NCBI RefSeq assembly: GCF_003704095.1
Contig: NW_020847208.1
Span: 310,001-374,000 of the forward strand
Length of the DNA stretch: 64,000 nucleotides
Source: Pocillopora damicornis
Lineage: Eukaryota
Reading direction: 5' to 3'
The translations under genes were made by a program, and so were the position numbers. Below are positions 1-25,500 of this stretch, piece after piece (the first letter of the stretch is position 1; each line of letters opens with the position of its first letter). The notes beneath the pieces were generated by a model. The model saw only the letters and a program-made list of their open reading frames with translations, was not told the origin of the DNA and made no database searches.

Positions 1-102
1 AACTCATGAATAAGATTCTTTTGTACATTTCTTTGTGTTACACTCCATTTTATTCCTTTTATACTCATCATTTACCTCTCTAATCTACCTTTTCGTCTAC
101 AG

Positions 103-3100
103 CCCCAACAACTACAAACGGTGAGTAGTACCACTTGACTAGTTTTTTTGTTTGTTTGTTTGTTTGTTTGTGGTTCTGACATGCCTTAAAATAATGTTTT
201 GGTGATGATTAAGTTTGACATATCTCGAATAGAAAGTAACACTCTTATCTTCCCAAATGTAGCACCACAAGTGACAACTCAAGCCAAAACAACAAGTGGT
301 AAGCAACTGTGTTAATTTTGGATTTTCTGATTAAATTATGCTACTCCATAATATTAACTATGCATTATTTCATCTTCTGCAGCATCTCAAGTAACAACTA
401 CAAGTGGTACGTCAAATCTGTTAACTTTAATCCCGTTGCCTTTTCATCACTTCATTTCCTTAAATGCTTTCTGTTTTAATCTCATTTACGTTTAAACACG
501 CACTAACATCATAATCGTTATTATCATTATCATCATCCCTATTTTCCAATTTTGGTCGGGGTTGTTATCGTTTCCAATGTTCTTTTTTTATTCAGCACAA
601 AAAACTACAAATGGTGAATCAAATATATCAATTTTTGCTGCATTACCTCCCTACAGCACGTAGCTTTCTTATCATTATTATTCGCGCGTTTCTGCCTTTT
701 TCCTTTTTCGTAAAAAACATTTTTCTCTCTCCAAACACAGCACCTCAAGTCACAACACAAGTAACAACTACAGCTTGCATTTTGTCTTCTCATCATTTGC
801 CACGCATGTTTTACTCGGCTTAATTAAGTCCCGAGGCTATGTCACCTTATAAAGAACGAAACTGACGATAGTGACCCACATCAATGGCTGTCAATCTCTT
901 TATACGCATACGCATGCACCGCTTGAACAAAATCCTACAGAAAGTCATTTCAATCCAAGCAAACACATACGATAATGTTTTTCTTATTTATTCAGCACCC
1001 CAAGTCACAACTCAAGTTACAACAACAAGTGGTTTGTATGCCTCGTTTCTTTTGAGCTGGATTTAATCTTACTCGTGTTTTCAGACACAAAAACTGCTCT
1101 TGACTGTCAAATATGGTTCATTTTTGATTAACCTGTTCTCTTTCCAAACACAGCACCACAAGTGACAACTCAAGGAGCGAGTACAAGTGGTGTGTCTTAG
1201 TTTGACGTTTATTCGTTTTCTATAATCATCTGCATCACTCTAACATCTCCTGTGATATTGCCTATGTTCAAAAAACTCTATTTACCCTAAGGGAAGACAC
1301 GCCTGGGGAATGCAAGAAATTCATCGCCGAAATTATATTAGTTATTAAGAATTTCATACGCTGATCGCTGCAACTGGTTTTAATGTCTTGGAAGACTAAC
1401 ATATCTCTTTCGTTTCTGTTTTTTTTTTTGTTGTTATGTAGTTTTATTTTGCACGTTTTATTGTCATTTGACTTGAAAACATCGTTTTGAAAAAAAATTC
1501 CTCCGCCTTTCCATTCACAGCACCACAAGTGACAACTCCAGGAGCAACTTCAAGTGGTACGTTTAACAAAAACATTCATTTCTTCTCCTTCATAAGCTTT
1601 TTTTAGCTCTTTGTTTGAACAATGTTTATTCATCTCAAATCTCCATCTTTTTTTATGTATTCCTCCATTGCCAACAGCGTCTGGAGGAACAACTACAAAC
1701 GGTAAGTTTAAACTTTGCGGTACTTTAATTTGTAGGCACCTTACCTCAGACTGAAGTTTAGACACCGATTTTTGGATAGCTAACATTTGATTCATATGAT
1801 ATCATTTGCAATCTCTTTCAATTCTCTAGATTTTTCGTTAAATTCTCACAAAGCCATCTTAGAAATTCCTTTTCTTTAATCTTTTCTACAGCACCCTCCA
1901 CAGCCCCCGGAGTATCTACTACAAGCGGTACATGTATACTTTAGTTAGCTTTTATGATTGCATTGTCAGACAGTGCTCACAATTCTAACGTATAGTGAGA
2001 TGTTTAAAGAAATTTTTCTTCACCTTACCTCCACTATTTCATGGTGTACAGCCCCTGGAGTAACTACCACAAATGGTACGTTTGAACTTCCTCGCTCTTC
2101 AAATCGTCAATTCCTTTAAATTTAGGCAGTACGTATAACTCTATCGCTAGATAGCGATATTTAAGTAAAGGTTTTTTTCCCCTTCCTTTTCTCACCTATT
2201 TCATCTTCTACAGCTCCCGGACTAACATCTACAAGTGGTATGTTAAAACTTTCCACGACTTGAAATGTTGAATTTCTTTTGAGCTTAATCACGCAATGCA
2301 AACGATTCTTACGCTGTAACGCAATCCTAAAAAAAAAAAAAAAAAATTCCCTTTCTTTCCTTCTTCATCATCTGCAGGAATGAAAACAACGAGTGATGCA
2401 TTCAAACTTTCCAACATTTCAATTTGTCAATTCCATTTAAGCATACAATGCACACAGTAAGGATAACTAATATCTAACTTTTAACTTTTATATGTCCAAT
2501 TACAGCTCCTCAACCAACAACTCAAGGAGCTGGAACTGGTATGTCTGAATCTCTGATTTGATAAAATAAACACTGGTTTTTTTTTTTCACCATTATTTTC
2601 TTTAGTTTTTTGTTTATCTTTATGTTGACTGTGTGGTAAAGAGAGGTCCGGTTTCGAAATCTGGCCAAGTCTCTGTGTTGTGTTCTTGTGTAAAACAGTG
2701 TACTTTCTCTCCACCCAGGAGTATAAATGGGTACCAGCAAATTGTCAGGAAGGCTGCTGGGGGTGGGGGGTTAAGAGGGGGGTTAATCTTGAAATGGACT
2801 GCCATCCCTCCTAGGGGGGAGAAGTAATACTCCTAGTCGCTTCTTGCTATGGAGACGGAATAGGCTCAGCTTAGATGGGCCACTTGGCTCTAGTAGAGTC
2901 TTTACCTCGTGACCTTTACCTAACGTTGGCTGTAATTTATTTTCATGTGTGCTTGTCCTTTTTCAGCGCCAGCAACAACGGCCGGTAAGGGAGTATTTTC
3001 TTATCACCTTATTTTACATATACCCTTCGATCCATTCCTGCTCAGTCTGTGCTCACGTCATTTGAGTTTTTAACCTCACAAAATACACTTGGATGATGGA

Positions 3101-4751
3101 TTTGCCAAGTAAAACCTCTATGTCTCTTAACAGGACCACAAGTGACAACTCAAAAAGCATCTACAAGTGGTAAGTCTGAGATAAATTGATCTTGCTTTCT
3201 CTTCTAAATTAATTCAGTATCTAGATCTCTTGTTACAGGTTAAAGTCAACATAGAATAACCCATTTACTTTTTCTTGGGTGTTTCATCTTTCTTAGCCCC
3301 AGGAGCAACAACCACAAGTGGTAAGTTGAACCTTCATACTACGTTTGCAGCCCAAGCGCAAATTATCAGGACTTACACAACTAGTGTACTTGACAATAGC
3401 CAATAGCATGTGGGCTTTGAAGTTTCTTGTGCTTGCGTTTGTCCTGTGGTGTCGCTGGCCATGATTTAAATAATTAACATAGCACTAATGGGACTTGGTC
3501 GGCAATGTTGGAAAACCTGAGGTGTCTTACCGATACATGGGTCCAAATTAGATCTCATGATTAAGATGATGAAAGGCAGGAGATAGGGTAAAAATCTTCA
3601 AATAAAGGCAAAATCACGGGTGGAAACTTTTTGCCAACATATATGACGAAAATTTAAGCAACCAGTTTCCACTAGAATTTAACAGCGAAAAATTTATAGT
3701 TTAGTTTGAAAAGTGTTGCACCAAACTTAGTACCACCTTAAGTGCCATTCGGTATAATAGTAATAATAATAATAATAACAACAATAACAATAATAAAGAA
3801 ATGTATTTTTCATTCTTTAAATTTTGCTTTCATTTTGCTTTCAACAGCACCACAAGTAACGACCATAAGTGGTGAGCGAACTCACTTTTAATTGAAATAA
3901 TAAACTTTACGAAACATTTTTTCTAAATTTATCTTTTCTCGTCTTGTTCTTTCCAGCATCACAAGCTTCAACTACAAGCGGTAAGTCTTATTTTAACTTT
4001 GCTTAACTCCCAGTGTCAATGTTCTTCAATTTCATTTTACTGAAATGAACACTTTGTCTCATTTACAGCACCAAAGACAAAAACTACAAGTGGTATGTCT
4101 AAACCATCGTTGTTTCGATTAGTATCCAATAAAACACTTTTCCATTTTTGTTTGTTGATATTTATAAATTTAACAACCTATTGCTTCATTTATATCGATA
4201 TTTTTGGTGTCCAATCCTTATCTTTAGGGCCAGAAGCAACAACAACAAGCGGTATGTTTTTTTTCTTCTTTTTTTTTTTTAAATCAATACTGCTTTGATG
4301 TCTTCGAAACTAAAAAGTGAATTTGACTTTCTCGTGTCATTTCTCCACTTACAGCACCACAGTTAACAACTACAAGCGGTACGTGTATTCAAACTTTAAA
4401 AAAAGAAACTTTACTCCTAACAATAACATTCTTAAATCCACTTTCTAGTTATCATCATATGTAGTAACGACATTTCAGTGACTGTCATAAGAGTGTCAGA
4501 AATTGGCGAGCATTTGATGTGTCAGCAACCTCTGATGTTCTTTCTGTTTTTTTCTTTTTCCCTTGTGTTTTTGTTCTGTATTTCTTTTTCAATTCCTCGA
4601 TATCGAGTAAAATTTCCAGCTTCAGTTTTACCTTTGATTAACGGTTCATATAAGATAATATTTATAATATATTTATATCACTCATTCATATGTCAATCAT
4701 CTTCACTCTTGTCTTGTCATTACTTTTCAGCTCCTGAAGTTGCAAAAAGTG
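103..4751 (+). CDS. Array of 21 symmetric phase-1 micro-exons (18-36 nt) encoding a Thr/Ser/Pro mucin-like repeat
   Basis: AG/GT-flanked exons with polypyrimidine tracts at 103-120, 263-298, 383-406, 596-613, 996-1031, 1154-1189, 1521-1556, 1678-1701, 1892-1927, 2052-2075, 2214-2237, 2506-2538, 2967-2984, 3134-3169, 3297-3320, 3848-3871, 3957-3980, 4069-4092, 4228-4251, 4355-4378 and 4731-4751. All lengths are multiples of 3 and all end in G. Total 564 nt = 188 aa (e.g. APQVTTQVTTTS, APGATTTS). Confidence 0.9.
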
Positions 4752-7700
4752 GTAAATACGATAATGTTGGTCTTAAAATCATAAATAATTGACAAAACTC
4801 TCCCTAGATAATATTTAGATTAGATTCAGAAAACTAAAAAAAAAAGTTGCCATGAACAATTTTTTTTTCTGATCCTAGTGGTTTCTCACCTCTTTATCTT
4901 TATTCACAAGTTTCCGTCCAAAATAACGATCCATTTCACACACTTTTTTACCTAAGATATAAAACTATGAAACATGAATTTTTTTTTAGCTAAAAACCTG
5001 TTTGCGATTGAAAAAATTTTTCACTACACTCGGCTTACTTGAACATGCTTTATCAGAGCACAAATGGATGCTAAAGCCGTTTCACTATTAAGGGAAATCA
5101 TGGTTTATTTTGAAAATGAAATGTCAGCCTAATAAATGGGGAGATCAACGTTTTCCTTTTCTTTAAAGTTCCCTAAATTATCTTACATTTTCTTCACCCT
5201 CCAACCGTTTCTTGTTTCCTTTGCTACTAAAAAGAGTACAGTTTTTGCCCCATCATTTGGTAATATTACACATAAATTTTTCCATAAAAACGTCTCGAAT
5301 TCTGAAAACCTATTTTTAAAGTGAACTTATCAAAACAATGTTTAGCATGCTCACTCGTTGTCTTTTCCGGCAGGTGGCTGTGACTTAGCATTTTTGGTGG
5401 ATGCCTCGTCAAGCATGGATGTTACAAATTTCCGACGAGTGATAGATTTCGTCACTCGCATTTTCCGTTCATTTCCTCTCGGCGAAAGTATGCGATACGG
5501 ATTAGTTCTCTTCGGTGATAATGTAAAGGTACGTTGGTCAACTGGTCATTAGTATACCGTTCTTTATAATGGCTGCAGAAAATCAAGAGCAGTTATAGCA
5601 TAGGCGCCTTCTATTTCTATGCTTTGAAGATTGTAACTTGTTGGTTGGTGTGCGAAGGACCGGCCTCGCCGAATTTGTTCGGTTTGACTAAAATTCTCGC
5701 TTCTTTGGGAATATCTGCTATTTTATACATGGTTCATAAAGTAACTGAAACTTTATTGTAAATAAACCAAAGTGAATATTTCTTTAGGTTATCTTCCGAT
5801 TTGGACAATACACGTCAATGCCTCAGGTAGACACGGCTGCCGCCAATGCAAAGCAGATTGGTGGTGGCTGTAACTTGCGAGGCGGTTTGTCAGAGTGCAA
5901 TGCAGATCTATTCAAAGGAGACGCCGGTGGAAGGGCACGCATCCTTGTTGTGCTTGTGGCTGGAGAGTCAGAACACGACGTTTCCAGAGAAGCCAATTCC
6001 TTGAAGAGAGTCGGTGTCAAGATCATCGCTATTGGAATGGGTGGTTCATATGATCAATTCGATTTATCATCCATGGCAAATTCTCTGTCCTACATTCTTA
6101 CAATTGGGAAAGTCAGCGATATAAACAGCTTACAAGGAAGCTTGTCGACCCTTATTTTACAAGGTAATTGTTTCTCCAGTTTTCCTTTCCTTTTTCAATT
6201 TTTTTTCGTCTTTTTTTTTCATTTCTATTTGTTTGCTTCTTGGCTTTCTTCACTTTAAAGAGCATATAAAGGTTTTTTAGCCGCGCACATGGTCAGTTGA
6301 CAGGCTCTAAAAATTTTTAAGCGGTTCATTTCCAAATCTACTGTAACCATTTTGCTCCTTGTTCAATTTTCTGGTTATTTTGTTCTTTGTTGTTATATTG
6401 GATGCCTCTGGCGGTCCTCTAATTGACGCTTTCATTTGAATTAAAAACAACTTTCGGTGACCCAAAAGTATCTTGCCTTTAAATCACTTTGGTTGCTTGA
6501 TCATGCCTTTCGTTACATCTCCTTACCAATCCGAAACACTTTTCATCTAAGAATTGATGAATTCAAATTCAATTTCTTTCAGCCGAGCAAGAAGTAACCA
6601 CCTCAGGGCGTGGTGGTGAGTATATGCGCGTATTTTAGAAGGACAATGTAGCGATAATAATCAATTTATTGTTTTCAGAGTAACACGTTTGGTTTTTTTT
6701 GACTCCCTTCTATATTCCTTCTTGTGTTTTCCCTTTTTTGGGGTAATTTCCCACAGAACCTAGAGTTTTTTTTAAAGTTAATTTTGTTAGGTTTGTTAAT
6801 GTTCATATATCAATTGTATTTTATTTTGTTAATTTTCAATCAGTTTATGTCACAGTGGCCTGAACTGAGGTGTAATCATCGTATTCCCCTTTGGCCATGT
6901 CAACATGTGGCGTCGATCTCAAGTTACTCTTTCTCGTCGCTTTTTATATGAAAGATACGGTTTCTAAACAAGGAAAATTACAAAATAAATGAAGTTCGTC
7001 TAACGACTACTATGTTTTTCTAAGGTCGCTGTGATCTTGCCTTTATGGTAGATGCATCATCAAATATTAACGGAAAAGGCAACTTTCAACTAGTAAAGAA
7101 TTTCGTCAGTAACATGCTCAACTCATTTTCTCTCGGTGGCGATGTGCGATATGGATTAATAGTCTTCAGCGACAAAGTTGAGGTGAACTTATGACTACGC
7201 TTATCAGAAATTCAAATTTTCATCTCACTTCACATTTTTTTACATTCCATATTTGCTTTGCTCAGAAGTATTTCCTTGACTTTTTCCAAATAAACTCCCA
7301 TATCTTGTATTATAAACATTAGATAAAGAAGATTTTAACTTTGATAATTTGTTCGAGAGCTACCCTAACCCTAAACCCTAACTCCAATGACTCGAATCTT
7401 TGAAGGAAGTCGAAAAGAACTAATTAAATTTAATCAAAGGGAACAGAGAGTTTGCATAAAATGTAACGAAAAGGTGAGACAATCTCGTATTGTGATAGTA
7501 AATGTAAAGAAAAACTGAGGAAATAAAAAAAGCGAGTCATTTACCTTGGGAATAACAAAGGCTCTGGTGGAGGTTCAAAGATAATTTAGATTAACCATTC
7601 TGCATAACCACACCACTGCACCATCAAATATAAGCAAATAATTTTTTGAGGGACGACAAAAGAAGGCTGAGTGTACCAAGTGTCAACAAGCTTAATATTA

Positions 7701-10053
7701 TTCTAATTCTTTCAGGTCGTGTTTGGCTTCAATCAGTTTACCTCTATGTTCGAAGTTAATCTGGCAGTGAGCGAGACCCAACTGATCGGTGGAGCTTGTA
7801 ACGCTGGTGCGGCACTCACACGCTGCAAGACAACACTGTTTCCGACTACCACAGCCAAAGGAGTTGAACGTGTTTTAGTTGTGCTTCTTGCTGGAAAATC
7901 CTCAGATGACGTCTTACCACCCACCGAGTCTTTAATAAATGCTGGTGTGAAGATAATCACAGTTGGAATGGGTTTATTTATCGATAGGTCACAGCTTTCG
8001 GAGATTGCATACTCTCAGTCGTATGTTCTAACTACTGACCTGATCGCTGGTTTACCAAGCATTAGCGGGAGCTTGGCTACGTTGATTTCCCAAGGTTCGT
8101 TTTTCTTCACACATTTTAACTGTTTTAGAACACGTAAGAACTTCACTTTTGTCAATTGGCTGAATATCGTCTCAGTGCCACGAGGGTCCTTTGTTGGAGC
8201 TGCATTTCTATAATCATCTGCCAGATAATTTTGTGCAAATATAATTTAAATTAGCTACACATTTTTTTTTTAAGTCCAACGATGAACTTTTTCCGTCAAT
8301 AACAGACAAATTTTGAACGATGATTCGCTGCTGGTGTGTTTATCTCAAAAAAAGGCAAGGACTTTGAGTACTAATCTAGTAATTTCTTCTTTCCTACAGC
8401 TGGTGGTATCACCTTCAGTGGAAATTCAGGGGCAACAGACAGTTAGTCCTTATTTCAATTACTTCTCAAATACTGATTCAAACTTTTTTCCATAGATAAT
8501 TAACGCTACTGATTGATCGAAAAAACCCGCGATGATATTTAACATGAAGTTTCACGAAGGAAGCCCATTAGCTGGCTCTTATTTCTTATAAGTTTTTCGA
8601 ATGTTTCATGTTTCGAATTTTTATTATCTATTTGCTTTTTTTTTCTGTTGTCTTTGTGTTCGCTCGCCGTCTGCTTTGATTTTTTTAACCAGCTCGAACG
8701 TGGCTTTCGTATACAGTCATTTCCTAAACACTTATCATACAACCATATGAAGCAATCATGTCCAAAAGGTGAACGAACGGCATAAAACTTTTATCAACAG
8801 CGCAGTTGAGGGGCAGAGAGGATCTAATCCCCTCTTTGATGGTTTAAATAAAATAATCCCCATTCCTGGAAACCGATGCATGCAGTCAGCATAAATGTAT
8901 TTTACAAATCACTTTTTGCTGACCAATATTTCTAAAGGTTGCTTCTCGTAATGTGCTGTTGATGTATTTGGACACCAGAGCTTCTTTTTTTTTCTAATTT
9001 GCTTCTTTTCTTTTCGTCTAGTAATCCTTGACCTGGGATTTATGATAGATGGATCCTCCGCCGTGGGAAGTGAGCAGAACTTCAAACAAATTATTAAGTT
9101 TGTTAGCGCTGTAATCCATGCCTTCCCACTTGGCCATTACAAAACTCGTGTTGGGCTGGTCGTGTGCTCCTCCGAAGATTTAGTAGTCTTCAACTTTTAC
9201 ACATACTTTGACATGTTTAGCATAGATCAGGCGTTGTCTTCAGTGAAATACCCCGGGACAAACTCGGCTGGGAAGCAGCTACTCTATCTCGGACGTGGCT
9301 TGGAGGTCTCCAAGCATTTCTTATTTGACAGCTCGTGGAGGAACCATGTCCCACGGCTGCTTATTATGGTGGTTGCAGGCAACTCCGCTGACAGCGTTGC
9401 TACCCCATCGATGGAGATCAGATCTTATGGAGTAGAAATCTTCTGTATTGGAGTAGGGAGTGTATCTAGTAATTGGCAACTCAATGCCATGGCCAGTTAC
9501 CCCTATAATGCGCATGTCTTCAAGAGTAGCTACGAACAAATGGGAAAGATTGCAGAACTACTTGTTACCAACATTTTGAGAGGTAAAAAGGAAATTTTGT
9601 CGATTCGATTTCCATTTCATTACACGCAAAGGGCCATACCGTCCTATATAACTTTGTTCAACCATAAACAACTTTTTGTTTTCATTTTCCTTCGAATTCT
9701 TTCCAGGTATTTTCAGGAATTATTGTCGCCCTTGTTATTGCGGTAAGTCGACAAGTCTATTTATCACGGTTTGGCTTAGTTCACGGTGCTTTATTAATTA
9801 CGTAAACAAATTTTGTAACTTTTCAACCAGTCATACTAACTAGAATGACCATTGCATTAAAGGTTATCGGGATTACTGTGGATACTGTCCCAGCTATTTA
9901 CGAAAGAAGAGAAGCGCAATCATTTCAACAGAAAACAAGTACGACTGCTCACGTCATTTCATTATTCATCCCCTGCCACGTCGTTATCATCATCGACCAC
10001 GCGATGTCCACTATAGTCGCCTCATCGGCGGACGTCGACACCAGACGGGTTGA
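103..10053 (+). CDS. Gene 1: 5'-truncated multi-exon gene for a mucin-stalk + 3xVWA protein with Cys/His-rich tail, presumably secreted
   Basis: After the micro-exon array (103-4751) the GT-AG exons are 5374-5528 and 5788-6163 (VWA1, CDLAFLVDASSS), 6583-6615 (AEQEVTTSGRG), 7025-7182 and 7716-8094 (VWA2, CDLAFMVDASSN), 8400-8441 (AGGITFSGNSGATD), 9022-9582 (VWA3, DLGFMIDGSSA), 9707-9742 (GIFRNYCRPCYC) and 9863-10053 (GYRDYCGYCPSYLRKKRSA...PRRYHHRPRDVHYSR...TG*, TGA 10051-10053). Phases join in frame. The start codon lies upstream of the window. Confidence 0.88.
741..777 (+). pseudogene. Degenerate micro-exon copy with no in-phase GT donor
   Basis: Acceptor 'ccaaacacag' precedes CA CCT CAA GTC ACA ACA CAA GTA ACA ACT ACA (APQVTTQVTTT), but 'gcttgcat' follows instead of AGT G|gt. 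Confidence 0.65.
2378..2395 (+). pseudogene. Degenerate micro-exon copy, donor GT>AT
   Basis: 'tctgcag|GA ATG AAA ACA ACG AGT G|atgca': an 18-nt GMKTTS unit followed by AT, not GT. Confidence 0.6.
2640..2920 (+). mobile_element. tRNA-derived SINE, cnidarian Nin/Deu-like family
   Basis: Recognised motifs 'tgtgttgtgttcttg', 'ctctccacccaggagtataaatgggtacc', 'atactcctagtcgcttc', 'gatgggccacttggctc' and a 'tttacc' tail. Family assignment is from recall, not a database search. Confidence 0.7.
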
Positions 10054-13000: not shown

Positions 13001-13525
13001 TATATCTGCTTGACGAACCGCTTTGTGAGTAATTGGAGCGAGTTTGGAAGTTAACCACCCGTGAAGTGTAAACACACGCTTCAACAGTAATAAAAGACCA
13101 CCTCACAAAGACAAAACCGATTGAATTTCATGTACCTGCAAGAGCCACTCAATCGCTGAGTCTTCAACTATATCAAATGCTCTTGTACTTAGGGAGGCGC
13201 CGGTGCCGTCTTCTGTAAAATACGGCCTTGATCAAATATGCATCGTTGTTCGAATCTTTATTGTACTTTAGGTCCATGAAGACAAAACAACAGTCAGGGT
13301 AGCCTTCAACATGGCGTAACCTAATCTTGTTTGTGACTCTAAAACGAAAGAGGAAATTTTTTAAATCGACGTGAGCTTAGTTTGAGTTCAAGTAAGTGGC
13401 TTCATCTTCTCCGTGGTAAAATGATACCCGGTACTAGCCAATTTTAACTATGCTTTGTTCGTTCATCTTCGATCGAACATTTGTTTAGTCTTGGAAAGGT
13501 GTTATTTGAGTTTCTCTCAACAGGA

Positions 13526-16500
13526 ATGAATGTTAACCTTTTTTTCGTATTGGCGTGGAACGTCCTTGTCATCTTTAAGATCTCAACAGTTTCTAGTGCC
13601 TTGAAAAGAGGTAAGGTCAAGATTCTAAGGCGACTATTGTTCAGCGAAATGCTATGTAATTACTTTTTAATCAGTAACAACACGCTTAATTTTCAATAAA
13701 GAGAAAAGTATCAAATTACAACTATTTGACTTATGATTAGCTGTTGAATGTTTTAATTTCAGGTTTAATCTTATTGTGCCATAATGGCTAAATTTTACCG
13801 CTGGTGCCATTTACTGTTACAGTATATTCAGAAACAAAATTAGACGCCACTAGTTAAGCGCAACGATTATGCTCTCTTGCCGGTATATGTTAAATCTGTG
13901 TCACTGCTTTTAGATCTAAAGGAGTGTATGATCTTATCACAGGAAAGGTTTTAATTCGGACTGCGTTTCAGATAAGCAACGAAATTTCGACCAACGCAAA
14001 TTGAAATTATACCTCGTCGAAGGCTCTCTTTTGTCTGCAACCAGAAATTGGAAAAAAAAAGGTTGCATTAGTGTTCCGTATACCCCAATTAGACCTGTCG
14101 ATTCAACTGTTTTCGCAACAATAGACAATCGCTGCGAAGTACTGTTAGTACTAGCTCAATTGATGCAGTTTCAAGCGAGCACATCTATTTCGGTTTGCTT
14201 TCTGGTGAATCATCTGACCTTAACCAAATTCCTTATAGAGCATGTGGTACCTCCTAGGATCCATGAACTCTGAACAGGAGGCAGCGAGCGACCAGGCTTT
14301 TTTATGTTTCTTTCATCATCGTTTTTGCGTCTCCTCAAAAAGCTAACTACGGACTAAAAGTGATACTTGATTCAAAAAGAAAAAAAGAAAATGTTGGTAG
14401 CTTAAAGAATTCATTCGAAATGCCATCGTTAGCTAAGGTAGTGTGTGTAGCCTCCCTTCCGCCTTGACATATGAACTAAAGTATAAGTCTAGTCTTCCCT
14501 TATAATTTAGGAACCCACGCATTTTCAATATACAGTCATTGTTTTGTAAAGGTCCTGCTGGTTAGTTTTATAAAAGAACTAATCGTACTGATCGCACATC
14601 ATAGTATTTGGAAGCTTCAGAGGAAACTTGCTTGGTCTGGGGAGTTGTTGTTGTTGGCTATATGCTCAGCGGGATGATGAGAGTGTATCCCACTTTGATA
14701 GATTTTTTCTTTTTTCTTTTTTTTTTTTTTAGCTCTAAAAGCTCAGAACGCCGAGAGCAGGTTTCTCATCGAAAGAATTGGTTTGAAAGCCGCTTATTCC
14801 ATCAAACCGCCTCACATTAAGTCATCACCTCTGGAGAGAAGACGAAAGCAACACTCAAAAGAAAAATCTCACTTTCAAACATTATCCGGTCATGTGGGAG
14901 TAAAGAGGCAATTTAATACACAAAACAGTTTGATTCCACGACCTTTTGATGTATCTTCAGTGAAAGGTAAAATGCCAATATAAATAGTGACATGTTGGCA
15001 GTTATCATCATGCATTATATATGAATATAACTGCGTTTAAAATGAAGTTCAGATTACATTTTAGAAGCCCACATGAAGTGCAGTTTTAATCAAATTGTTG
15101 TTTTTATTTGGAAAGTTATAAATATACCAGGAATGCTACATATTAAGAAGACACCTGTGACAACGATATAAGACAAAAAAATAAAACGAATATGACAAAC
15201 ACAGCAGAACAAACAAAGCAGAATTCAATCCCTTCAACGTCAGCCTCATTATTCGACTAGGATTTCGAGGCACTGGGTTGTTTATTTCACCGTAAAAATA
15301 GTGTTTTCTATCACCGAAGGCCAGAGAACTTTGTCTCCTTGAGCCATACCTTGAGATTGGTATTGAAATATTTGTAATATGATTTTTTTAGGCCACCCGG
15401 CTAAGATCGACGGAGAATTTCAGATTCGAACCCTTGTGTTTGTGTACTTTTTTAAACAAAAATTATTTTGCTCTTAAAGTGCTTCTCCCCAGCCAGAATA
15501 TTACGTCTGGGGATCAAAAGGCTGTCAGGTGTACCTGAGAAAAAGCTTAATATGTGAAGATCGAATTAAGCCGTCAGAAGTTATGGTTCCACTAACCTTC
15601 TATCTTTTGCCCAGCCTGTAAAACCCAAATAGATCTTGGATTCCTCATAGACGGCTCTGGAAGCATAGAGATGTACGGGAAAGGGAATTTTCAAAGATGT
15701 TTGGATTTTGTGAAATCTCTTACGAAAGCTTTTGTCGTTTCTCCCACGGACACAAGAGTTGGAGCAATTGTATTTTCGTCTCGAAGTGAACTTCAATTTG
15801 ACTTCAAACAATATAGCACGCAGCAAGATTTAGAAGCTGCGATAACTCGCATAAAATATCCAGGTTACAGGACAAAAACTGGCGCCGCACTCACAATGGC
15901 AGCAGACAAACTATTTAATGACGTTAGACAAGGCGTGCCACGCGTCCTTGTTGTCCTAACTGACGGCGCATCCAACGACGACGTAGTTAAACCGTCCGAA
16001 GAACTTAGAAACACAGGGGTGGTTATATTCTCTGTTGGCCTGGGGACACATTTTAGATTAGCACAACTAAATGCGATGGCAAGTGAGCCAAAAGCGGAAC
16101 ACGTGTTTACAGTTGATTTCCCCCGAATGGACACAATAGTTACAGCAATGCAGAAAACGTTGTGCAAAGGTGAGAAAAGAATTACAGCTTGGAATTCGCC
16201 ATTTTCCAAGAAATGGAAGTAACACGTGGCTGGCCCATAAAATCATGTGATTCTGATATCGTTGGGCTCTCTCCACGGTTTGTCATCTTACATTGACTAA
16301 ATGACTGAAAAATAGACTGAGAGACAGACTGGTTTACTGACTTAAGAACAGACCTTGTGACAATGTTAGAATTTTCAAATTTCTGTTTGAAGTATGAAGT
16401 TTTCAATTTGAACATTATTATTGACAGTTTTTTGTAATTTCATACAGCTGCTGTAAAGGCTGCCGCCGAGGGAACAAGTAAGTATACTTCAATTTTTCCC

Positions 16501-19500
16501 CAGTCTTAACGTAAATTACCCAATCATGTCGAGTCCCACTCTGAAAACTTCAAGCTTTTAAACCTGACCCGCAACACTTCCATCCAACGTATAGTAAGAG
16601 ACTTGCAGAGGGATTTCATGAAGAGCCTTGCCAACCGACGAGGTGGTGGTTTTTCAATGTCTCAGACCACTACTACAAGTGGAGGCAGCTCCTCGGGAGG
16701 AATGTCTGCTGGAGGTGGTTCTGTTTCTGGTTCCGTTCATGGAGGCTCTGCTAGTGCATCAGGTGCAGCCGGAGGCGGCGGTGAGTAACTTTCCGTGACA
16801 AGACAAGAATTTGACGCAAGATGATCTACGTTCACAACGAAGAAATGGAGAATTCGAACTTTATCCCGCCACATTGGGCAAGTGGATCACACTACATTAC
16901 GACAAAACATATATTAAAGGGACGCAGAAATACAACTGAGACAAGACACGTTCCTTGACAATGGATCCTAGGATATCGTCATGGTATCGCACCATACAAA
17001 TGACGCACAGATAACGGAAATAATCTGTGACATGTTTACATTGGATAGGGAATCCTAATGGATCATATAAACATCTCATTAGCTCATGACAGTGGACGAG
17101 GAACAAATAGAGGCCAATAGACGATACAGCTATGACCAAAACCCAACATACCCTACCACTGATATTGCGACTCCCTCGTCAAGCTAACAATGCTGTGCAT
17201 TAAATAGATGTATAATACGTGACATCGGTTTGTCTAATTTAGTTGCATATTTCTTCTGTTTATTTTTGATAATCATTTAATTTTACCTACCAATTTCATT
17301 TTTTTTCAGCTGGGGGAGCTGCTGGTGCCTCGGGAGGAGGTGTGTAGCTTCTTTCAAAAATTACAGTAATTGGGTCTTACTAAGAAAACTAGAGCTCGTT
17401 ATGCGAGTCTCTTCACGTCTGATTTTTTCCCTCTGCTGGAGGTATTTTCATTTTGTTTACCCTTTTCCATTCTTTCATGATATTCATTCTACAATTCATT
17501 CGTGGATCTAAGAGTATGGGCGTAAACTGTTCGATCCTCCCGTTCAATGCCACGGTTCTATGCCACCATTTAGTTATGAGTTTTGACTTTGGTATTAAAA
17601 AAATGTTCAGAAAGCCTTTGCTTGTTCAAATAAAGTTATGTTGAATTAAGGTTTTATGTGATGTTATAGTTGCGTTGCAAACCGGGCAGCATCGACTGAA
17701 GGATGGTGAGAACATTATACAACAATCAAGCAATTAGAAAATTTTTAATCTTCCTGACCGTTTTTTTTTGTTTTTTTGCCAGGAGGATGTGATCTTGCCT
17801 TCATGGTGGATATTTCATCAAGTATTGGTGGCGATGCGAACTTTCAACTCGTCATGAAATTTGTCATTAGCATTTTTCACTCATTCACTCTTGGCGGTGG
17901 AATACGCTATGGTCTAGTCACGTTTGGAAGCAGTGCTAAGGTAAAAGTGAATTAAGGTTACCCTCTAAAGGTGCTATGCATCGAGTCAAGCACCCCTTAT
18001 CTAAAAAAGGAGCAAAAGATTTTATAGTTGCCAAAACATTTGTTGAATGTAAATTTTACCCACGAGAATACAAGTGGCCGCCGTCAAGAGGTATCTTCGA
18101 GGAAATCAAAAACAAAACCGTGAAAGCATAGTGTTGATTTTCCAAGTGTGCTAAGTGAAATACAAAACTTTGTTGAGAGGTTGGATTCTAAATGCATAAC
18201 GTCATCGCGATAGATACGAGTGTAACTGACGGCCATCTTTAGTTTCGAGTAATTATCAAACGCCATGGATTCAACAAGTGATGTTGTAGGGCTTCAATGA
18301 ATAAGTGTTTCTATTTAATGTAATCTTTTTTTGCTCAAGTGAGAAAATTACACATATCCTAGTTTAATAAGTTCATGACCTTGCAAAATTCTTTTTACCT
18401 TAGGTGGTCTTTGGATTTACCCAGTATTCCTCAATCTCAGAGATAGACTCGGCAGTTGGCAGTGTCACATTAATGAGCGGTGGCTGTACTGCAGGTGCTG
18501 CACTTTCTCAGTGCAAGTCATCTCTCTTCGAGGGTGACGCCGGAGGGAAGGCACGTGTCCTGATTGTTCTAATTGCTGGAAGTTCTACTGATGACGTTTC
18601 AAGCGCCGCTAGCTCATTGAAAACAGCCGGAGTCAAAATAATTGCTGTTGGAATGGGCAGCTCATTTGTTCAGTCACAACTTACTTCCATGGCATTCTCT
18701 TCATCCTACGTCCTTACCGCCGCTTCGTATGGAGGTTTAGCTGGCATTACCGGAAGCATTACCTCACTAATATCTCAAGGTTTTTGAGAGTTTGTCCCTA
18801 TTCTTTATTGTTTCTTCGATTCTAATTTAGGGACACTTTCTTTTCGGGTAATTTGGTATTATCAACTGAGTTGATAACGTAAATTAGCCACCTTAAAGAG
18901 TTTAAAAGCGGCGTTTCGAGCGTTAGCTTTTGGTCGGAGCGAATGACATATGGCTTACGCTCAAAACGTCACTTTTAAACTCTTAATGGTGGCTAATTTA
19001 CGTTATAAACTCAGTTGATGATATTGAATAACCCTGTTATACCCTCCCACCGACGCAGCACCACAATTTCTTCAGAAACTTTCCCCTTTTATTCACTTTC
19101 CCTTCGACCCTGATTTTAATTTCTTCTAGGCTTTCCCTCAGTGCAGACAAGCAGGGTTACTATGAACCAAGGGATCATCGAAAAAAAAAATTTAAAGCTT
19201 CACTCAGAATTTCGTGTTCTTTGATATGCACATATGTTCAAAAGGATTTTTTTAAAACTTCATCGATTTTACATGAATCCGACAAAAATATCATTGAAAA
19301 CAGCCTATGATATGCTACAACGCTGCAACCCCTCCTTTTCCTTATCTTTGAATTATCGTTTGCTAGAACTGAAGTATTTAACTTTATGCTTAGTCGTGCA
19401 CTGATTTGATACAATCTTGAAATTATAGCCGGCGGCATTACCGCTAGTGGAGGTGCCGGAGGTGCCGGAGGTGCCGGAGGTATGGACTCATACGAATTAT

Positions 19501-22500
19501 GCTTGTCATCCTTTCCATCCTCGATCGTGTTTGTTTTGATTTCGTTGTTTTTGTTGATGTTGTTTGTGATTTTGCTTATTTGGTGTTTTTGTTTAACTTA
19601 CTAGCTAGATAACTGAACTGACGGTATCGTACTTCTATTATAGACATCATGCTTTAAGACAGGCTCCATTAACATCCGAAAATCAACCCAACTAGAGGGC
19701 CTGAAAAAGCAAGTTACGGTTGAGGGAACTTCATTGAAGATGAAATTTATTCCCATAGGCTAGTCGTGGGTCTATTGAAGTTTCTCTATTTTCTTATTCC
19801 TCTTTAAGCGCTGCATGTGTAAAAAGCATCATAATTATACATGATACATGCGCAAAACGCCAGCACTCCACTATTACAATTATTTTGCTTGTCATAAAAA
19901 TAATAATAAGTTTAACGTAAAAGTTCTGAGTTAGATATTGATTCAAGCCTTTGCTATTCCAGTTTAGTAACTGGTTGAACTTTCATACTTTTTAGGTTCC
20001 TGTGATCTGGCCTTCATGTTGGATGCCTCGGACAGCATTCAAGGGGAAGCAAACTTCAAGTTGTGTATTGAATTCATCTTGGTAATATTTCGTGCCTTTG
20101 GTATGAGTGGCGGTATACGCTTTGCTTTAGTCCTATTTGGAAGTTCAGCTCAAGTTGCATTTGATTTCAGCAAATATTCTTCAATCTCTGAAGTTGAAAC
20201 GGCCCTTGGTCAGGTATGTGTACTATTTTATTTGCATTATCCCATAACACTGCATCTGAAAGTGTAAATTAGTTTGATTTAGCGAGAGAATGACGAGGAC
20301 ACTTGTCGTGAAACTCAAGGATAAATATACCCGCGTACAATTCAGATTAAATTTAAAACACTACGGATCAAATAAGGACACCTGGCCTTCCGAAAGCGGT
20401 AAGGAATGTCTCACAGGAGATAAATCCCAGTCAAAGAGGTGATCAAAGTAAGAGACCGGGTTTAAAAGGGAATTATCTTATAGATAAACTTTGACAAATA
20501 GGTGATCAAACTGGAAGGGATTTTTTTAAAAATAAGAAAAATTTTGAGTGCTATCGTCTCGCAGCTTAAATTGCTTTGTAATAGCTGCGTATAAAGATAA
20601 CTGTTGATTCTTCTTTTTAAACCTATAGATTAAACTCGTCGGAGGATCTTGTGCCGCGGGAGCGGCGCTTTCCACATGTCAATCGTCTTTGTTTGCAAGC
20701 GCTGGGGGAGGTGGAGGTGCCGCTGCCGGTGGTGGTGCTGTAAGTGGAGGGGCAGCAGCTGGGGCGAGTGTTTCTGCGCGCCTTCTTGTAGTAATGATGG
20801 CAGGAAAATCAACAGACTCCGTCTCAAGCTCATCTGGTGCACTGAAACAAAGTGGTATTAAAATCCTATGTCTTGGAATGGGAGGAAGCGTCGATGCGGG
20901 TCAGATGAAAGAAATGGCTTCCTCCGCCGAGTATTTTGTCTCAGTAGGATCGTTTGCAGAACTCTCTGGGTTCTCGCAGCAGTTTATCAGCTTAATTGGA
21001 TCAGGTGAGAAAGGAATATGATTAACTGCGAACACGAAGTAATAAAGATCCATTTCGATAAGATTACCAACGCTGTTCGCAAAACATCGCACAACACATT
21101 AAACAATTGTTATCTGTCCCGGAACACTTTATAAAATCGTGATTAGGTAAGGATTACATATTTGCGACAATGTTTTAAATAATATAAAATAAGACTTTTT
21201 TGGAACGATAGTGGTGTACTGAGAAGCAAAATAGTTGTCTTCCACGTGGTTTCCGTCTGGAAAGGCATCTTATAGAGTCAGCTTCAGTCAGGTCTAAAAA
21301 GGCTGCCAAAGTATTCTAAACTTTTCCAAAACAGATTAAGGCGTATGTGATTAATTTCTATCTTAAATAAGCTGGAGGAATTTCAGCCAGCGGAGCAGCT
21401 GGAGGAGCCGCCGGTGCAGCTGGAGGCGCCGCCGGAGGAGCAGCTGGAGGTGCCGCCGGAGGAGCAGCTGGAGGAGCAGCTGGAGGAGCAGCTGGAGGAG
21501 CCGCCGGTGGAACAGCTGGAGGAGCTGCCGGTGGAGCTGGAGGAGCCGCCGGAGGATTAGCTGGAGGATTAGCTGGAGGAGCAGCTGGAGGAGCCGCCGG
21601 AACAGTTGGAGGAGCCGCCGGTGCAGCTGGCGGTTTAAGTGCTGGAGGAGCAGCTGGAGGAGCAGCTGGAGGAGCAGCTGGGGGAACAGCTGGGGGAACA
21701 GCAGGTAGGTGCATTAGTTCACTTTGCATATATGAGTTTTGATACAAATTATATCGGGTAGTGTGCCATTTAGGGTAGGTGTGCTAACGAGGTTGATTTT
21801 GACGCCAACCATAAAGCCATATTTACATTTGACAAGATCTTTACGATACGAGACATTTTCTGACATCACAGCTCGAACGAACTTGACTTTGTACTCAAAA
21901 TGAAACGAAGCTTCACTGTACCAAAAACGTGTGACTAAAATTCCAACTAACTGAATGTGAAAATTGCATTCTGGATACACTGTTCTCTCCTGCTGCATCA
22001 AAAAGAAAAATTCGAATTTGCAGTATTAATTGGTGACTTTTATAGCATTCTCATCAAGATCAACATACATTTTGGAGCGTTAGCCATTTTTAACTACTAA
22101 GGTGGGTGTCGACACACCAGAATTTGTGATAGTATTGTATTTACTGGTCAAGACTGTGAATTAGTCAGACGATGGACGGATTGGATGGTCTCAGTGTTGT
22201 AACATACATAACAGCTAAAGATATGAAACTCTTCGTATCGCTTTAAATGGCCAATATTTTGTAACTCTGTTTGCGAAATAGGTAAGCAGGGCTTTCAAAC
22301 AAGTCTGCTTCCACGTAAGACGACTCTCGGAAAGGCAAAACAAGAAGAAGCAGGCCGTGGTACAGAATGATAACAAATACTCCTTAGTATCCCCTTCCTA
22401 TATCTGAGTACAAGAGGCTCGCATTACGACGTGAAAAAAATATGATATTTATTCCTTGACATTTATCTTGTCAATGAGGATGCTGATAAATAACGGCTTC

Positions 22501-25500
22501 AAAAAATCGTCGTTTTAAAACAAATTAACATGCTTTTTTAAAGGAGCAGTCGATCTGGCTTTCATGCTTGATGCCTCTAGCAGTGTAGGTGATGATGCAA
22601 ATTTCCAGCGGTGTCTAAACTTTGTTAGAGCAATCTACAGCGGCGTTACCATTTCATCAGCGGCATTTCGCATAGGATTGGTCTTGTTTGGCGCGTCCGC
22701 CTCGGTGTCGTTTGACTTCAGCAAGTACAGCTCAGCATCTGAAATTGACGCAGTTATTATAGGAATGAAAATGATTGGTGGAGCGTGTGCTGCAGGTCAA
22801 GGTTTAAGTACATGTCAAACTCAATTATTCGCCCAATCACGTCAAAATGCTATCAAAGTCCTGTTGGTGATGATCGCTGGAAGATCAACAGATGACGTGT
22901 CAGGCGTAGCAGGAGCTTTGAAAAGTTCTGGGGTCAAGATCTTCTGTCTCGGGATAGGAAGTTCTATTGAAAGAACTCAGCTGATATCAATGGCTAACTC
23001 AGAATCGTACATTCAAGTAGCACCCGACTATAGTCAGCTAGTATCATTGTCCAGTCATTTTTTATCACTGATTGGTCAGGTAGCTGCCGGTAAGTAAATT
23101 TTGTACCTACTTACAAAGTATACTGTAAAGGAGGGGAGTCGATTTTACATTGGTAACCCATACCACAAGTGAACGATATGTGTTTGAGGGTATCTCATGG
23201 TCCGTGACAAATGTAGTAGGCTTGGTGCCACACAAAAGCAGCCATGAGCAAAATAGCGGGCGGATATTCAGGATTTATAGCAAAGGGGAACACTTGGAAA
23301 CTATTTTTGTTAAAATAATAGCAAGGCTGCCACCACAGGTGCAGGAATGACCGCTGGAACAAAAAAGAGAGGGAAGAATTGTACTTGGGTAGGCAATAAT
23401 GCAACTGCAGGTACCTTGACATTCATTCCTGGAGAAGGTAGGAGAATGGATGTCCTTGCTGGATGAGGTACGAGAAGAGGAACTACGGGTGGTGCAGAGG
23501 GACAACTGCACTTAGGAATCATACCCAATAAAAGTTCCTCACTAGGGTGGTAGGACCATTGGATCAGAAGACGGTGTAAACGGGACTTACTAGGTTGTCA
23601 CCAGGCTGAGCTTCAGTGGTGAAATGACAGGAAGCCTAGGTGGAATAGGCGTGGGTTTCACGGAATATATGCATCTTGGAGACAACGTAACGAATGCCCC
23701 TTGCAGGTACAGGCATGACCGCTGTAGCAACAGTAGATGAAGTTGCAACAGCCACAGATCTTCCCAGACCTATCCTAGGTGGAAGCGGAGTCGGAATCAA
23801 AGTTTTCTTTTGCAGAGAAATATTACAATATATTGTCTTGTTGTTTCATTTTCATGGCCACTTTCTGCATTATTCTCAGCATCATTTACAAAACGATGAT
23901 CATTTTCCCTTCTTCCCCTCTCCTCTTCCAAGTAACAACTTGAAGTCCCACTCGGTGTTTCTTTTGAATCCTAGCCTGTTTAGAACACTCTCTCGTTACA
24001 GTTCTGGCTTGAATCGGCGTCTGCGACATATGGAGTTAGTAAGGTCTTTTCAGGGAGGCTTATCGAGAGAATCGTGAGGGAACATGTAGAAAATGAATGA
24101 TGAATGAATATGACAAACGTTTGAATTCATGCTTCAGTGATGGAGAAATAAAAACAAATTTTCTAGGAGTATGTCCTTGGAAACGAAACGTTTAAATGAA
24201 AACTTCGTTTCCGATACTCAAAGTGAATATGAGAATGGTCTAGTGTTGCATTTTTAACATTTGTACTGATGCAAAAAGGTCAAATTAAAACTGTCACAGC
24301 AGGTCGTCATGCCTATGCAGAATGCATAGAAACTAAGTCTAATGCACAATATCCTCCAAATCAACTTCTAACAAAACCCCTGCAGCAATATCTAGCGAGT
24401 GCGGCTCCGAACACAATTGCAGCTACGACAAAGAATTACAAATTACAACACTGCAACGTTACGTGACATTTCACTGTAATATATAACATAACGTTTAGCT
24501 TCATCGTGACTTTACATGGCTTACTTAAACATTACAAGACAACATGATATTGATTTCAGAGTTTAACATTGCAATACAGTATAATCGAATAACGTACCCA
24601 GTAATTACCAGGACGTTTTTTGTGCGCTTTGAAACATTTAGGGGCGAAGTCGCTTCTTTTATTGTCCTGGAGTGTTCGTAAAAAAGCTGCGTAGGTTACT
24701 TCAGTCAGGCATTTGATATAGAAAAATCTATAAACATTTTAATCAGTCTTACTTAACTTATGGACACTTAAAGGGCATGATAAATCCGTCCCGTAATAAC
24801 AATATCTTTTATTCAATAAAGCCGGAGGGATGGCAGGTGGAGCTGGCGCTGCCGGAGCAGCAGGGGGAATTTCAGGTGAATTGACAACCACAAAACTATT
24901 ATTAAATTTAAGGTGAAGCCTATCGGAGCAGTTGTGTTCATTTCTATTTGAACTTTCTTATGTACCCTGGGTGTAGTGATCTGGTTTTTAGTAACATAGC
25001 ACATGAACCTCACACTCGTATGAGGTTTTTTTCGAAAATGCATTGAGAAGTTTTAAAGCTTTGGTATTGACTTTGAAAGTTTAAAGAGTCCATCAAACCA
25101 ATTTTGAACTACTTCCATTCAGACAACAGAATAAGGGATGGGAAATTGAGCTCAATATCAAAACGACCGATTTTGCATGTGTATCTAGTGATGTCTTGAT
25201 TAATATTTGGTGGTCTTTCGGTAAATAGTCATATTAGAGACGATTAACTTTTTTTGAGTGGACTGAACGTTTTCCATCGCTTTCATCTCTCCTATTCAGG
25301 TGGGATTGCTGGTGGAGCTGGAGGAATGGGCGTTGGAGGATCCATTGGAGCAGGTGGAGCAACAATAGGAGGGGGTGGTATGTTAAGAATGTATGATATT
25401 CTTTACACACTTTCACAATTCATCAATAATTGCCTCCCTTGCCATATTTGCTTTTGTTTCTCAGTTGGTATTGGCGTGCAACCCGTGATTAGGAGACAAT

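Follow-up and report, generated by a model that had tools for sequence, protein, structure and literature searches.

Introduction

The Pro/Thr/Ser-rich (PTS) repeats of typical mucins are carried by one large exon, according to PMC13345508. Another design has been described in Schistosoma mansoni, where exon 2 of SmPoMuc is 27 bp long and encodes one 9-residue mucin repeat; this exon and its flanking introns are found in tandem, in units of ~1 kb of which a gene can hold up to ~20, and the genomic repeats are separated by microsatellites (PMC2576457). Here we analyse an array of micro-exons for which SmPoMuc is, by analogy of gene layout, the closest precedent. It lies in a stretch of 64,000 nucleotides (nt) of the coral Pocillopora damicornis (NCBI RefSeq assembly GCF_003704095.1, contig NW_020847208.1, positions 310,001 to 374,000 of the forward strand), hereafter called the window, whose coordinates we use throughout. 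We propose, with a probability of roughly 0.7, that this array codes for a mucin-like spacer of ~185-190 residues located within a single, very large VWA/C-type lectin protein of the extracellular space. As judged from sequence comparisons, the layout appears to be ancient in corals, whereas the exon content turns over as exon-plus-intron units are duplicated in tandem and splice sites decay.

The PEVK region of titin is built with one low-complexity repeat per short symmetric exon, and the number of these exons that are included sets the length of an extensible spacer. CD44 and CD45 possess variable Ser/Thr-rich stalk exons that are alternatively spliced. In DMBT1, the SIDs are Ser/Thr-rich spacers of 20-24 residues whose number is variable (PMC3100851). 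Among spacers of this group, the variation in number comes from copy-number polymorphism or from alternative splicing. The frog integumentary mucin FIM-C.1 is reported to be highly polymorphic in size through alternative splicing (PMC7177656, which cites Hauser and Hoffmann 1992). Finally, the Schistosoma micro-exon genes (MEGs) encode small secreted proteins, with short exons set amid long introns of up to 5 kb, and are trematode-specific (PMC10526429). We found no cnidarian precedent for such an array in the literature that we searched.

Results and Discussion

A regular array of symmetric micro-exons

A scripted scan of the + strand located, between positions 103 and 4751, 20 micro-exons of 18-36 nt (18, 21, 24, 33 or 36 nt), each preceded by a pyrimidine-rich tract and AG and followed by GT. 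Every length is a multiple of 3 and every exon is in phase 1-1. Each of the 20 has G as its last base and opens with two bases, the first of them C or G, that complete a split codon; because the G is carried over from the preceding exon, this junction codon is always GCN (Ala) or GGN (Gly). Joined end to end by script, the exons give 546 nt, that is 182 codons, without any stop. The introns between them measure 84-589 nt, and three extra units lie inside the array: 596-613, whose AG and GT are intact and which is skipped, and 741-776 and 2378-2395, which are decayed copies.

An initial annotation, made from the letters of the window, had described at least 21 exons of these lengths, phases and ends, with Ala/Gly junction codons, one A-P-x..T-T-T-S/N repeat per exon and any subset splicing in frame. 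This description holds, with 20 exons plus the well-formed 596-613 in the window, with Ala or Gly at all window junctions, and with one Thr/Ser/Pro/Ala-rich repeat encoded by each unit. The annotation had also supposed that the array might continue to the left. It does, by one 18-nt micro-exon only, located 107-124 bases before window position 1, plus a 30-nt linker exon. The linker ends in A, and therefore the first junction codon, outside the window, is AAG (Lys) and not Ala/Gly. The total in the gene is ~21 micro-exons, including the one left of the window.

With a strict filter the scan picked up 19 of the 20 exons and unit 596-613, hence 20 units in 1-4800; 4731-4751 was missed because it fails the Thr/Ser rule. 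When the region was shuffled 200 times by a first-order Markov model, the same filter gave a mean of 0.065 units and never more than 1. It found 4 units over the remaining 59 kb of the + strand and a single one on the entire - strand. Could the array be no functional feature at all, but a set of chance AG...GT pairs or the relics of dead repeats? Two units have indeed decayed. However, 20 units were seen where 0.065 would be expected, RNA junctions fall exactly on the exon borders, and the units are conserved in other taxa and haplotypes (see below), so that this explanation is hardly credible. We rejected both its chance-pattern and its pseudo-exon-relic versions on the shuffle control and the exact RNA junctions.

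The splice sites of the array follow the consensus GTG/GTAAGT at the donor and TACAG/CAC at the acceptor (the slash marks the exon border), with a mean pyrimidine fraction of 0.75 at -20 to -4. The micro-exons contain 39% A and 32% C (A+C 70%) and 12.5% T, and the introns 38% T. The micro-exons are A+C-rich islands with strong splice sites amid short T-rich introns, which fits their recognition by exon definition. In the whole genome (234,350,878 bases in 4,393 contigs), no further array of this exon family was found above background: a 24-nt exon-start pattern matched the array only (6 of 6 matches), and an exon-end-plus-donor pattern clustered at the array only, its background being that of the reversed-pattern control.

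The introns of the array contain the microsatellites (GTTT)n and (ATA)n, at 142-171 and 3754-3796. A dispersed repeat of ~265 bp (2641-2907) sits in the intron between 2506-2538 and 2967-2984, outside the coding array. It has more than 40 copies of 69-81% identity on many contigs of the genome, and in each of the four RNA runs introduced below its contig depth is very high and its loose ends are numerous and varied; it looks like an abundant transcribed element of the SINE (short interspersed element) or MITE (miniature inverted-repeat transposable element) type.

Spliced RNA joins the micro-exons to the flanking VWA exons

Contigs of four RNA-type runs from four studies (X1, X4, X5 and X8, labelled 'coral metagenome') were aligned to a 6-kb stretch spanning the whole array. 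Among the junctions listed, 11 of the GT..AG type fall exactly on predicted exon borders. Written as last base/first base, these are 298/383, 406/996, 1189/1521, 1556/1678, 1701/1892, 3169/3297, 3320/3848, 3871/3957, 3980/4069, 4092/4228 and 4751/5374. They were supplied by X1, X5 and X8, hence by three different studies, and X4 gave unspliced contigs only. The predicted units are thus real exons, as the initial annotation had claimed. On the left side, exon 103-120, preceded by the micro-exon that lies outside the window, can be read letter by letter between two flanks of an X1 contig, and in the X1 contig chain the loose end before the 30-nt linker exon is the end of the upstream VWA exon. 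Since these junctions and loose ends chain together, the upstream VWA exon, the linker, the micro-exons and the VWA exon at 5374 belong to one transcript.

A mucin-like peptide

The 182-residue peptide consists of 30.8% Thr, 16.5% Ala, 13.7% Ser, 11% Pro, 8% Gln and 6.6% Gly. Thr and Ser together reach 44.5%, Cys and aromatic residues are absent, and only 7 residues are charged. Each micro-exon encodes one repeat of the form Ala/Gly-Pro-x-x-Thr-Thr-Thr-Ser. Such a long Thr/Ser/Pro-rich stretch, free of Cys and aromatic residues, is mucin-like in the PTS sense, and from its sequence the peptide is probably O-glycosylated. Dense O-glycosylation would turn it into an extended, protease-resistant rod of a few tens of nanometres, which could space the C-terminal trio of VWA domains from the upstream VWA/lectin modules.

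The same stretch could instead remain unglycosylated and act as a flexible tether or entropic spring, as titin PEVK does, or as a protease-sensitive hinge between the VWA blocks. A low-complexity, Cys-free sequence containing Pro, Ala and Gln would be disordered either way, and the PEVK spring, too, is encoded by symmetric exons that carry one repeat each. However, 44.5% Ser+Thr and runs of Thr-Thr-Thr-Ser beside Pro form a classical signature of mucin-type O-glycosylation, and with 7 of 182 residues charged the PEVK charge pattern is absent. We therefore consider an unglycosylated tether or hinge quite improbable.

The array is internal to a VWA/lectin protein

We mapped the gene by tblastn over 60 kb upstream and 35 kb of the window. 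On exons at either side of the array, Pfam PF00092 (VWA) exceeds its gathering threshold of 23.8 bits, with scores of 37.6-103.8 bits, and the nine flanking exons contain VWA and Lectin_C only, Lectin_C being found upstream. The upstream module, composed of a C-type lectin, two split VWA domains and one single-exon VWA, occurs ~5 times from ~29.7 kb to 0.6 kb before window position 1. Directly before the array the order is single-exon VWA (some 600-1150 bases ahead of window position 1), 30-nt linker exon, first micro-exon; after it come two VWA domains that are split and one that is encoded by a single exon, and then a Cys-rich/RKKR/His-rich exon ending near 10050 (Table 1). At least six VWA domains adjoin the array, and the whole gene probably encodes ~18 VWA and 4 lectin domains. 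The initial annotation was right in expecting flanking VWA domains. It had, however, placed the array as a stalk in front of them, and because VWA domains stand on both sides, with VWA/lectin modules upstream and three VWA domains downstream, the array is an internal spacer.

The upstream repeated modules could belong either to one giant gene (~18 VWA, 4 lectin) or else to a tandem gene cluster. A second gene with the same VWA exon types lies downstream (15620-23079 and 30104-30610), and a micro-exon scan of it revealed no comparable array.

When the neighbouring VWA exon was used in an exhaustive HMMER search, thousands of multi-VWA proteins matched; those of this gene were fragments only (P0100, P0131). 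Word-index searches for transcript-derived proteins gave only calls in the style of open reading frames (ORFs) on genomic contigs, reading through the donors into introns; these calls pointed to the orthologous loci and haplotypes described below.

Table 1. Units of the array and downstream exons, in window coordinates (X1, X5 and X8, RNA runs; L008 and L010, other coral-type assemblies; junctions as last base/first base; haplotypes, the eight other reef haplotypes).
Feature	Position	Strand	Length and peptide	Observations
Micro-exon	103..120	+	18 nt, APTTTN	Between joined flanks in X1/X5 RNA contigs; identical in 8 haplotypes
Micro-exon	263..298	+	36 nt, APQVTTQAKTTS	298/383 in X1, X5; kept in 8 haplotypes; aligns to L008
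Micro-exon	383..406	+	24 nt, ASQVTTTS	298/383, 406/996; conserved in haplotypes
Skipped well-formed unit	596..613	+	18 nt, AQKTTN	AG/GT; weak donor GTGAAT; bypassed by 406/996 in X1, X5
Decayed 36-nt-type copy	741..776	+		Without GT donor (GC after CTT) in reference and 8 haplotypes; bypassed by 406/996
Micro-exon	996..1031	+	36 nt, APQVTTQVTTTS	406/996; conserved in haplotypes
Micro-exon	1154..1189	+	36 nt, APQVTTQGASTS	1189/1521 in X1; splice sites conserved
Micro-exon	1521..1556	+	36 nt, APQVTTPGATSS	1189/1521, 1556/1678
Micro-exon	1678..1701	+	24 nt, ASGGTTTN	1556/1678, 1701/1892
Micro-exon	1892..1927	+	36 nt, APSTAPGVSTTS	1701/1892; onward to 2214 or straight to 2506 in X1
Micro-exon by sequence	2052..2075	+	24 nt, APGVTTTN	AG/GT, kept in 8 haplotypes; no RNA junction among junctions listed
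Cassette micro-exon	2214..2237	+	24 nt, APGLTSTS	In or out in X1; conserved in haplotypes
Decayed copy	2378..2395	+	GMKTTS	AT replaces GT donor; member of repeat family D1; bypassed in RNA
Micro-exon	2506..2538	+	33 nt, APQPTTQGAGT	Junctions in from 1927 and 2237; loose end after 2538 is start of exon 2967
Micro-exon	2967..2984	+	18 nt, APATTA	First 11 bases in X1 loose end behind 2538; conserved in haplotypes
Micro-exon	3134..3169	+	36 nt, GPQVTTQKASTS	3169/3297 in X1; aligns to L008
Micro-exon	3297..3320	+	24 nt, APGATTTS	3169/3297, 3320/3848 (X1, X8); aligns to L010
Micro-exon	3848..3871	+	24 nt, APQVTTIS	3320/3848, 3871/3957 in X1, X5, X8
Micro-exon	3957..3980	+	24 nt, ASQASTTS	3871/3957, 3980/4069
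Micro-exon	4069..4092	+	24 nt, APKTKTTS	3980/4069, 4092/4228
Micro-exon	4228..4251	+	24 nt, GPEATTTS	4092/4228 in X1, X5, X8
Micro-exon by sequence	4355..4378	+	24 nt, APQLTTTS	AG/GT, kept in 8 haplotypes; no own junction among junctions listed
Last micro-exon	4731..4751	+	21 nt, APEVAKS	4751/5374 in X1, X5
VWA first half, after array	5374..5529	+		Enters phase 1, leaves phase 0; Pfam VWA E 6.6e-11; 4751/5374
VWA second half	5788..6163	+		Pfam VWA E 3.7e-12
Two further VWA and C-terminal exon	7024..10050	+		Open-frame limits, not spliced exons; Pfam VWA on 7024-7191, 7707-8210, 8952-9743
Cys-rich/RKKR/His-rich C-terminal exon	9844..10050	+		No Pfam family

Constraint among haplotypes and turnover between species

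Eight contigs from other reef samples (L012-L019, Tara reef metagenomes), 94-98% identical to the reference, were aligned over the whole array. In these eight haplotypes every exon, acceptor and donor is intact, and both dead units carry the same defects as the reference. No exon gain or loss was found among them, three apparent insertions being scaffold gaps of N. Variable sites number 9 of 557 in the micro-exons (1.6%), 134 of 4,261 in the deep introns (3.1%) and 22 of 1,087 in the VWA exons; the exon versus deep-intron difference gives a Fisher p of 0.046. Gapped columns amount to 85 in the introns and 0 in the exons.

Orthologous loci were found by searching with the neighbouring VWA exon, as ORF fragments on contigs of other assemblies. 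Three of these coral-type assemblies (L008, L010 and L011) contain colinear arrays, and the layout of one repeat per exon is common to other corals. In L008 the neighbouring VWA exon is 73% identical in amino acids. Its lectin, VWA exons and post-array VWA exon are colinear with those of the window gene, the exons being 79-86% identical in nucleotides and the introns unalignable. Between the same two VWA exons L008 harbours ~27 micro-exons of the same type, 19 of which belong to a five-exon unit of ~740 bp repeated in ~3.8 tandem copies (L008:13722-16507) that are 92-93% identical, introns included. The peptides of this five-exon cassette are GTKVSPTS / APEVTTSTS / GTQVTSTS / EPQVSATS / APQVTTTSGSTN, and its expansion is recent. 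The array introns of L008 also contain microsatellites, (GTTT)n and (TTTG)n, at 13488-13548 and 16497-16535. In the Tara reef scaffold L010, the neighbouring VWA is 58% identical in amino acids, and nucleotide identity is 65-69%. The same VWA exon is followed there by at least 11 micro-exons, which continue to where the contig stops; they are mostly of 24 nt (AP/AQ-G-A-T-T-T-S), with introns of ~80-160 nt. In L011 (61% identity) the array begins at the contig end.

Few exons can be paired one-to-one between the window and L008. The layout is conserved while its content turns over, by duplication of blocks and decay of splice sites. Within the window, the units can be aligned to one another only over the exon and ~25 nt of flank; their duplications are old. 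The dead 741-776 and 2378-2395, whose defects are fixed in the nine haplotypes (reference included), are direct evidence of exon death within the array.

The documented length differences are genomic: they result from the duplication of exon-intron units between species. As the units are in phase 1-1 and multiples of 3, duplication, loss or skipping keeps the frame, and the length of the spacer is thus easily changed. We propose that this change is mainly genomic and takes place over evolutionary time.

Exon skipping: how much and of what kind?

Junction 406/996, present in X1 and X5, leaves out both 596-613 and the dead 741-776. Unit 596-613 reads AQKTTN in the reference and APKTTN or APKATN in all 8 other haplotypes, so that the Pro of the repeat has been lost in the reference allele. 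Exon 1892-1927 has two continuations in X1: one leads to 2214-2237 (contig depth 5.7) and thence to 2506, the other straight to 2506 (depths 17.2 and 10.8). Exon 2052-2075 is absent from both the 1927/2214 and the 1927/2506 forms. The extra letters at the X1 joints match allelic differences that are also present in the Tara haplotypes. All remaining junctions among those listed are serial and join neighbouring exons in order, in three studies.

The initial annotation had read the units as independently chosen cassettes, whose regulated skipping would yield many spacer lengths and O-glycan loads, as in the Schistosoma micro-exon genes. Indeed, every exon subset is frame-compatible, 596-613 is skipped in two runs in spite of its intact signals, and the two X1 forms just described differ by 2214-2237 and both bypass 2052-2075. 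Moreover, none of the 9 haplotypes carries a genomic deletion of these exons, which makes skipping likelier than a missing allele. On the other hand, the otherwise serial junctions, the origin of the variable event in a single run whose contigs cannot quantify it, and the genomic nature of the length differences documented between species argue against free combination, which we regard as unlikely. The two X1 forms, which come from one run of assembled contigs, are suggestive of cassette skipping of 2214-2237, and regulated, combinatorial exon use is unproven.

Alternatively, the array could be a strictly constitutive linker, in which the apparent skipping would reflect allelic structural variation, contig-assembly noise in repetitive sequence or splicing error, and the micro-exon layout would be a neutral trace of unequal crossing-over. 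Most junctions are serial, exon-intron blocks duplicated in tandem make the array grow, and the two dead units show a simple birth and death of units. The two X1 forms are also partly tied to alleles, exon 1892-1927 having A or G as its last base. However, the A-ending allele alone occurs in forms with and without 2214-2237, and this exon is intact in 9 of 9 haplotypes. A purely constitutive linker is thus possible, but we do not favour it. On present evidence, the exons are mostly included as a block in the transcripts, with occasional cassette skipping (2214-2237; 596-613).

Several points weigh against an internal O-glycosylated spacer in one giant protein. RNA joins only the nearest upstream module to the array, and neither a signal peptide nor the 5' end of the gene was identified; O-glycosylation and secretion are deduced from composition and domain types only. 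The RNA evidence consists of assembled contigs, from which rare isoforms are dropped and inclusion levels cannot be obtained, and exons 2052-2075 and 4355-4378 have no junction of their own among those listed. X1, which gave the most junctions, was classed as RNA by guess only, although its GT..AG junctions do show spliced RNA. Finally, the difference in diversity between exons and introns is modest (p ~0.05), and the depth of conservation of L008, L010 and L011 is judged from identity levels.

Comparison with described systems

The likeness to SmPoMuc concerns the gene layout only, and we claim no sequence relationship. In both cases one micro-exon encodes one mucin repeat and exon-plus-intron units are duplicated in tandem: the repeat families of the window include the exon and its splice flanks, and L008 has its five-exon tandem unit (92-93%). 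Microsatellites occur in the introns of the coral array as they do between SmPoMuc repeats. The units differ, however, being ~1 kb, >93% identical and homogenised in SmPoMuc, and 100-600 bp with diverged introns in the coral. SmPoMuc is also a recombining multigene family, as opposed to a single coral locus, and its repeats are N-terminal in a small secreted protein, whereas those of the coral are internal in a giant VWA/lectin protein. SmPoMuc is thus a precedent for a mucin with one repeat per exon (PMC2576457).

The initial annotation had called the array MEG-like. The array is a run of 20 symmetric micro-exons in the window whose skipping is frame-neutral, and in this it resembles the Schistosoma genes. 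But the coral micro-exons represent ~550 nt within a coding sequence of many kilobases, whereas MEGs consist almost wholly of micro-exons, and the coral introns of 84-589 nt are short compared to the MEG introns of up to 5 kb (PMC10526429). We thus rejected membership in the Schistosoma-type MEGs, as micro-exons are not the bulk of the coding sequence and introns are not long.

Like the gel-forming mucins MUC2, MUC5AC and MUC5B, the coral protein has a Pro/Thr/Ser-rich region flanked by adhesive or oligomerising domains. However, these flanks are VWD-C8-TIL and a cystine knot in the former, and VWA and C-type lectin in the latter. Furthermore, the coral PTS region has ~185 residues spread over ~21 exons, as against the single large exon of those mucins (PMC13345508). 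A gel-forming mucin was rejected because the nine flanking exons are VWA/Lectin_C only, the C-terminal exon has no Pfam family and the PTS region is split into ~21 exons.

Titin PEVK differs in being intracellular, charged and unglycosylated, with exons of ~75-84 nt and well-documented differential splicing, and the cassette exons of CD44 and CD45 are several-fold longer than the coral micro-exons. The SIDs of DMBT1 resemble the coral repeats as short, Ser/Thr-rich, O-glycosylated spacers among extracellular domains, but single SIDs alternate with SRCR domains whereas the coral array is an uninterrupted run of ~21 micro-exons. FIM-C.1 has cysteine-rich TFF modules where the coral protein has VWA domains.

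Implications

The P. damicornis array is an RNA-supported case of a mucin-like spacer built with one micro-exon per repeat instead of one large repetitive exon, and would mean that the repeat-per-exon design of the Schistosoma mucin SmPoMuc arose independently a second time. It also serves as a warning that the PTS regions of cnidarian matrix proteins can escape searches based on ORFs or on mucin-type exons. The locus is tractable for asking how cnidarian spliceosomes define exons of 18 nt.

A bolder and rather doubtful possibility is that the ~21 frame-neutral micro-exons, including the 'silent' 596-613 and 2052-2075, work as a regulated length dial, setting how far a VWA/lectin matrix or adhesion protein extends and how much O-glycan it bears according to tissue, life stage or environment. 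Such a dial would do outside the cell, in a cnidarian, what PEVK splicing does in titin, and would have persisted throughout Scleractinia for hundreds of millions of years. If skipping proves to be regulated, this coral gene would offer a simple model for the tuning of extracellular protein length by splicing.

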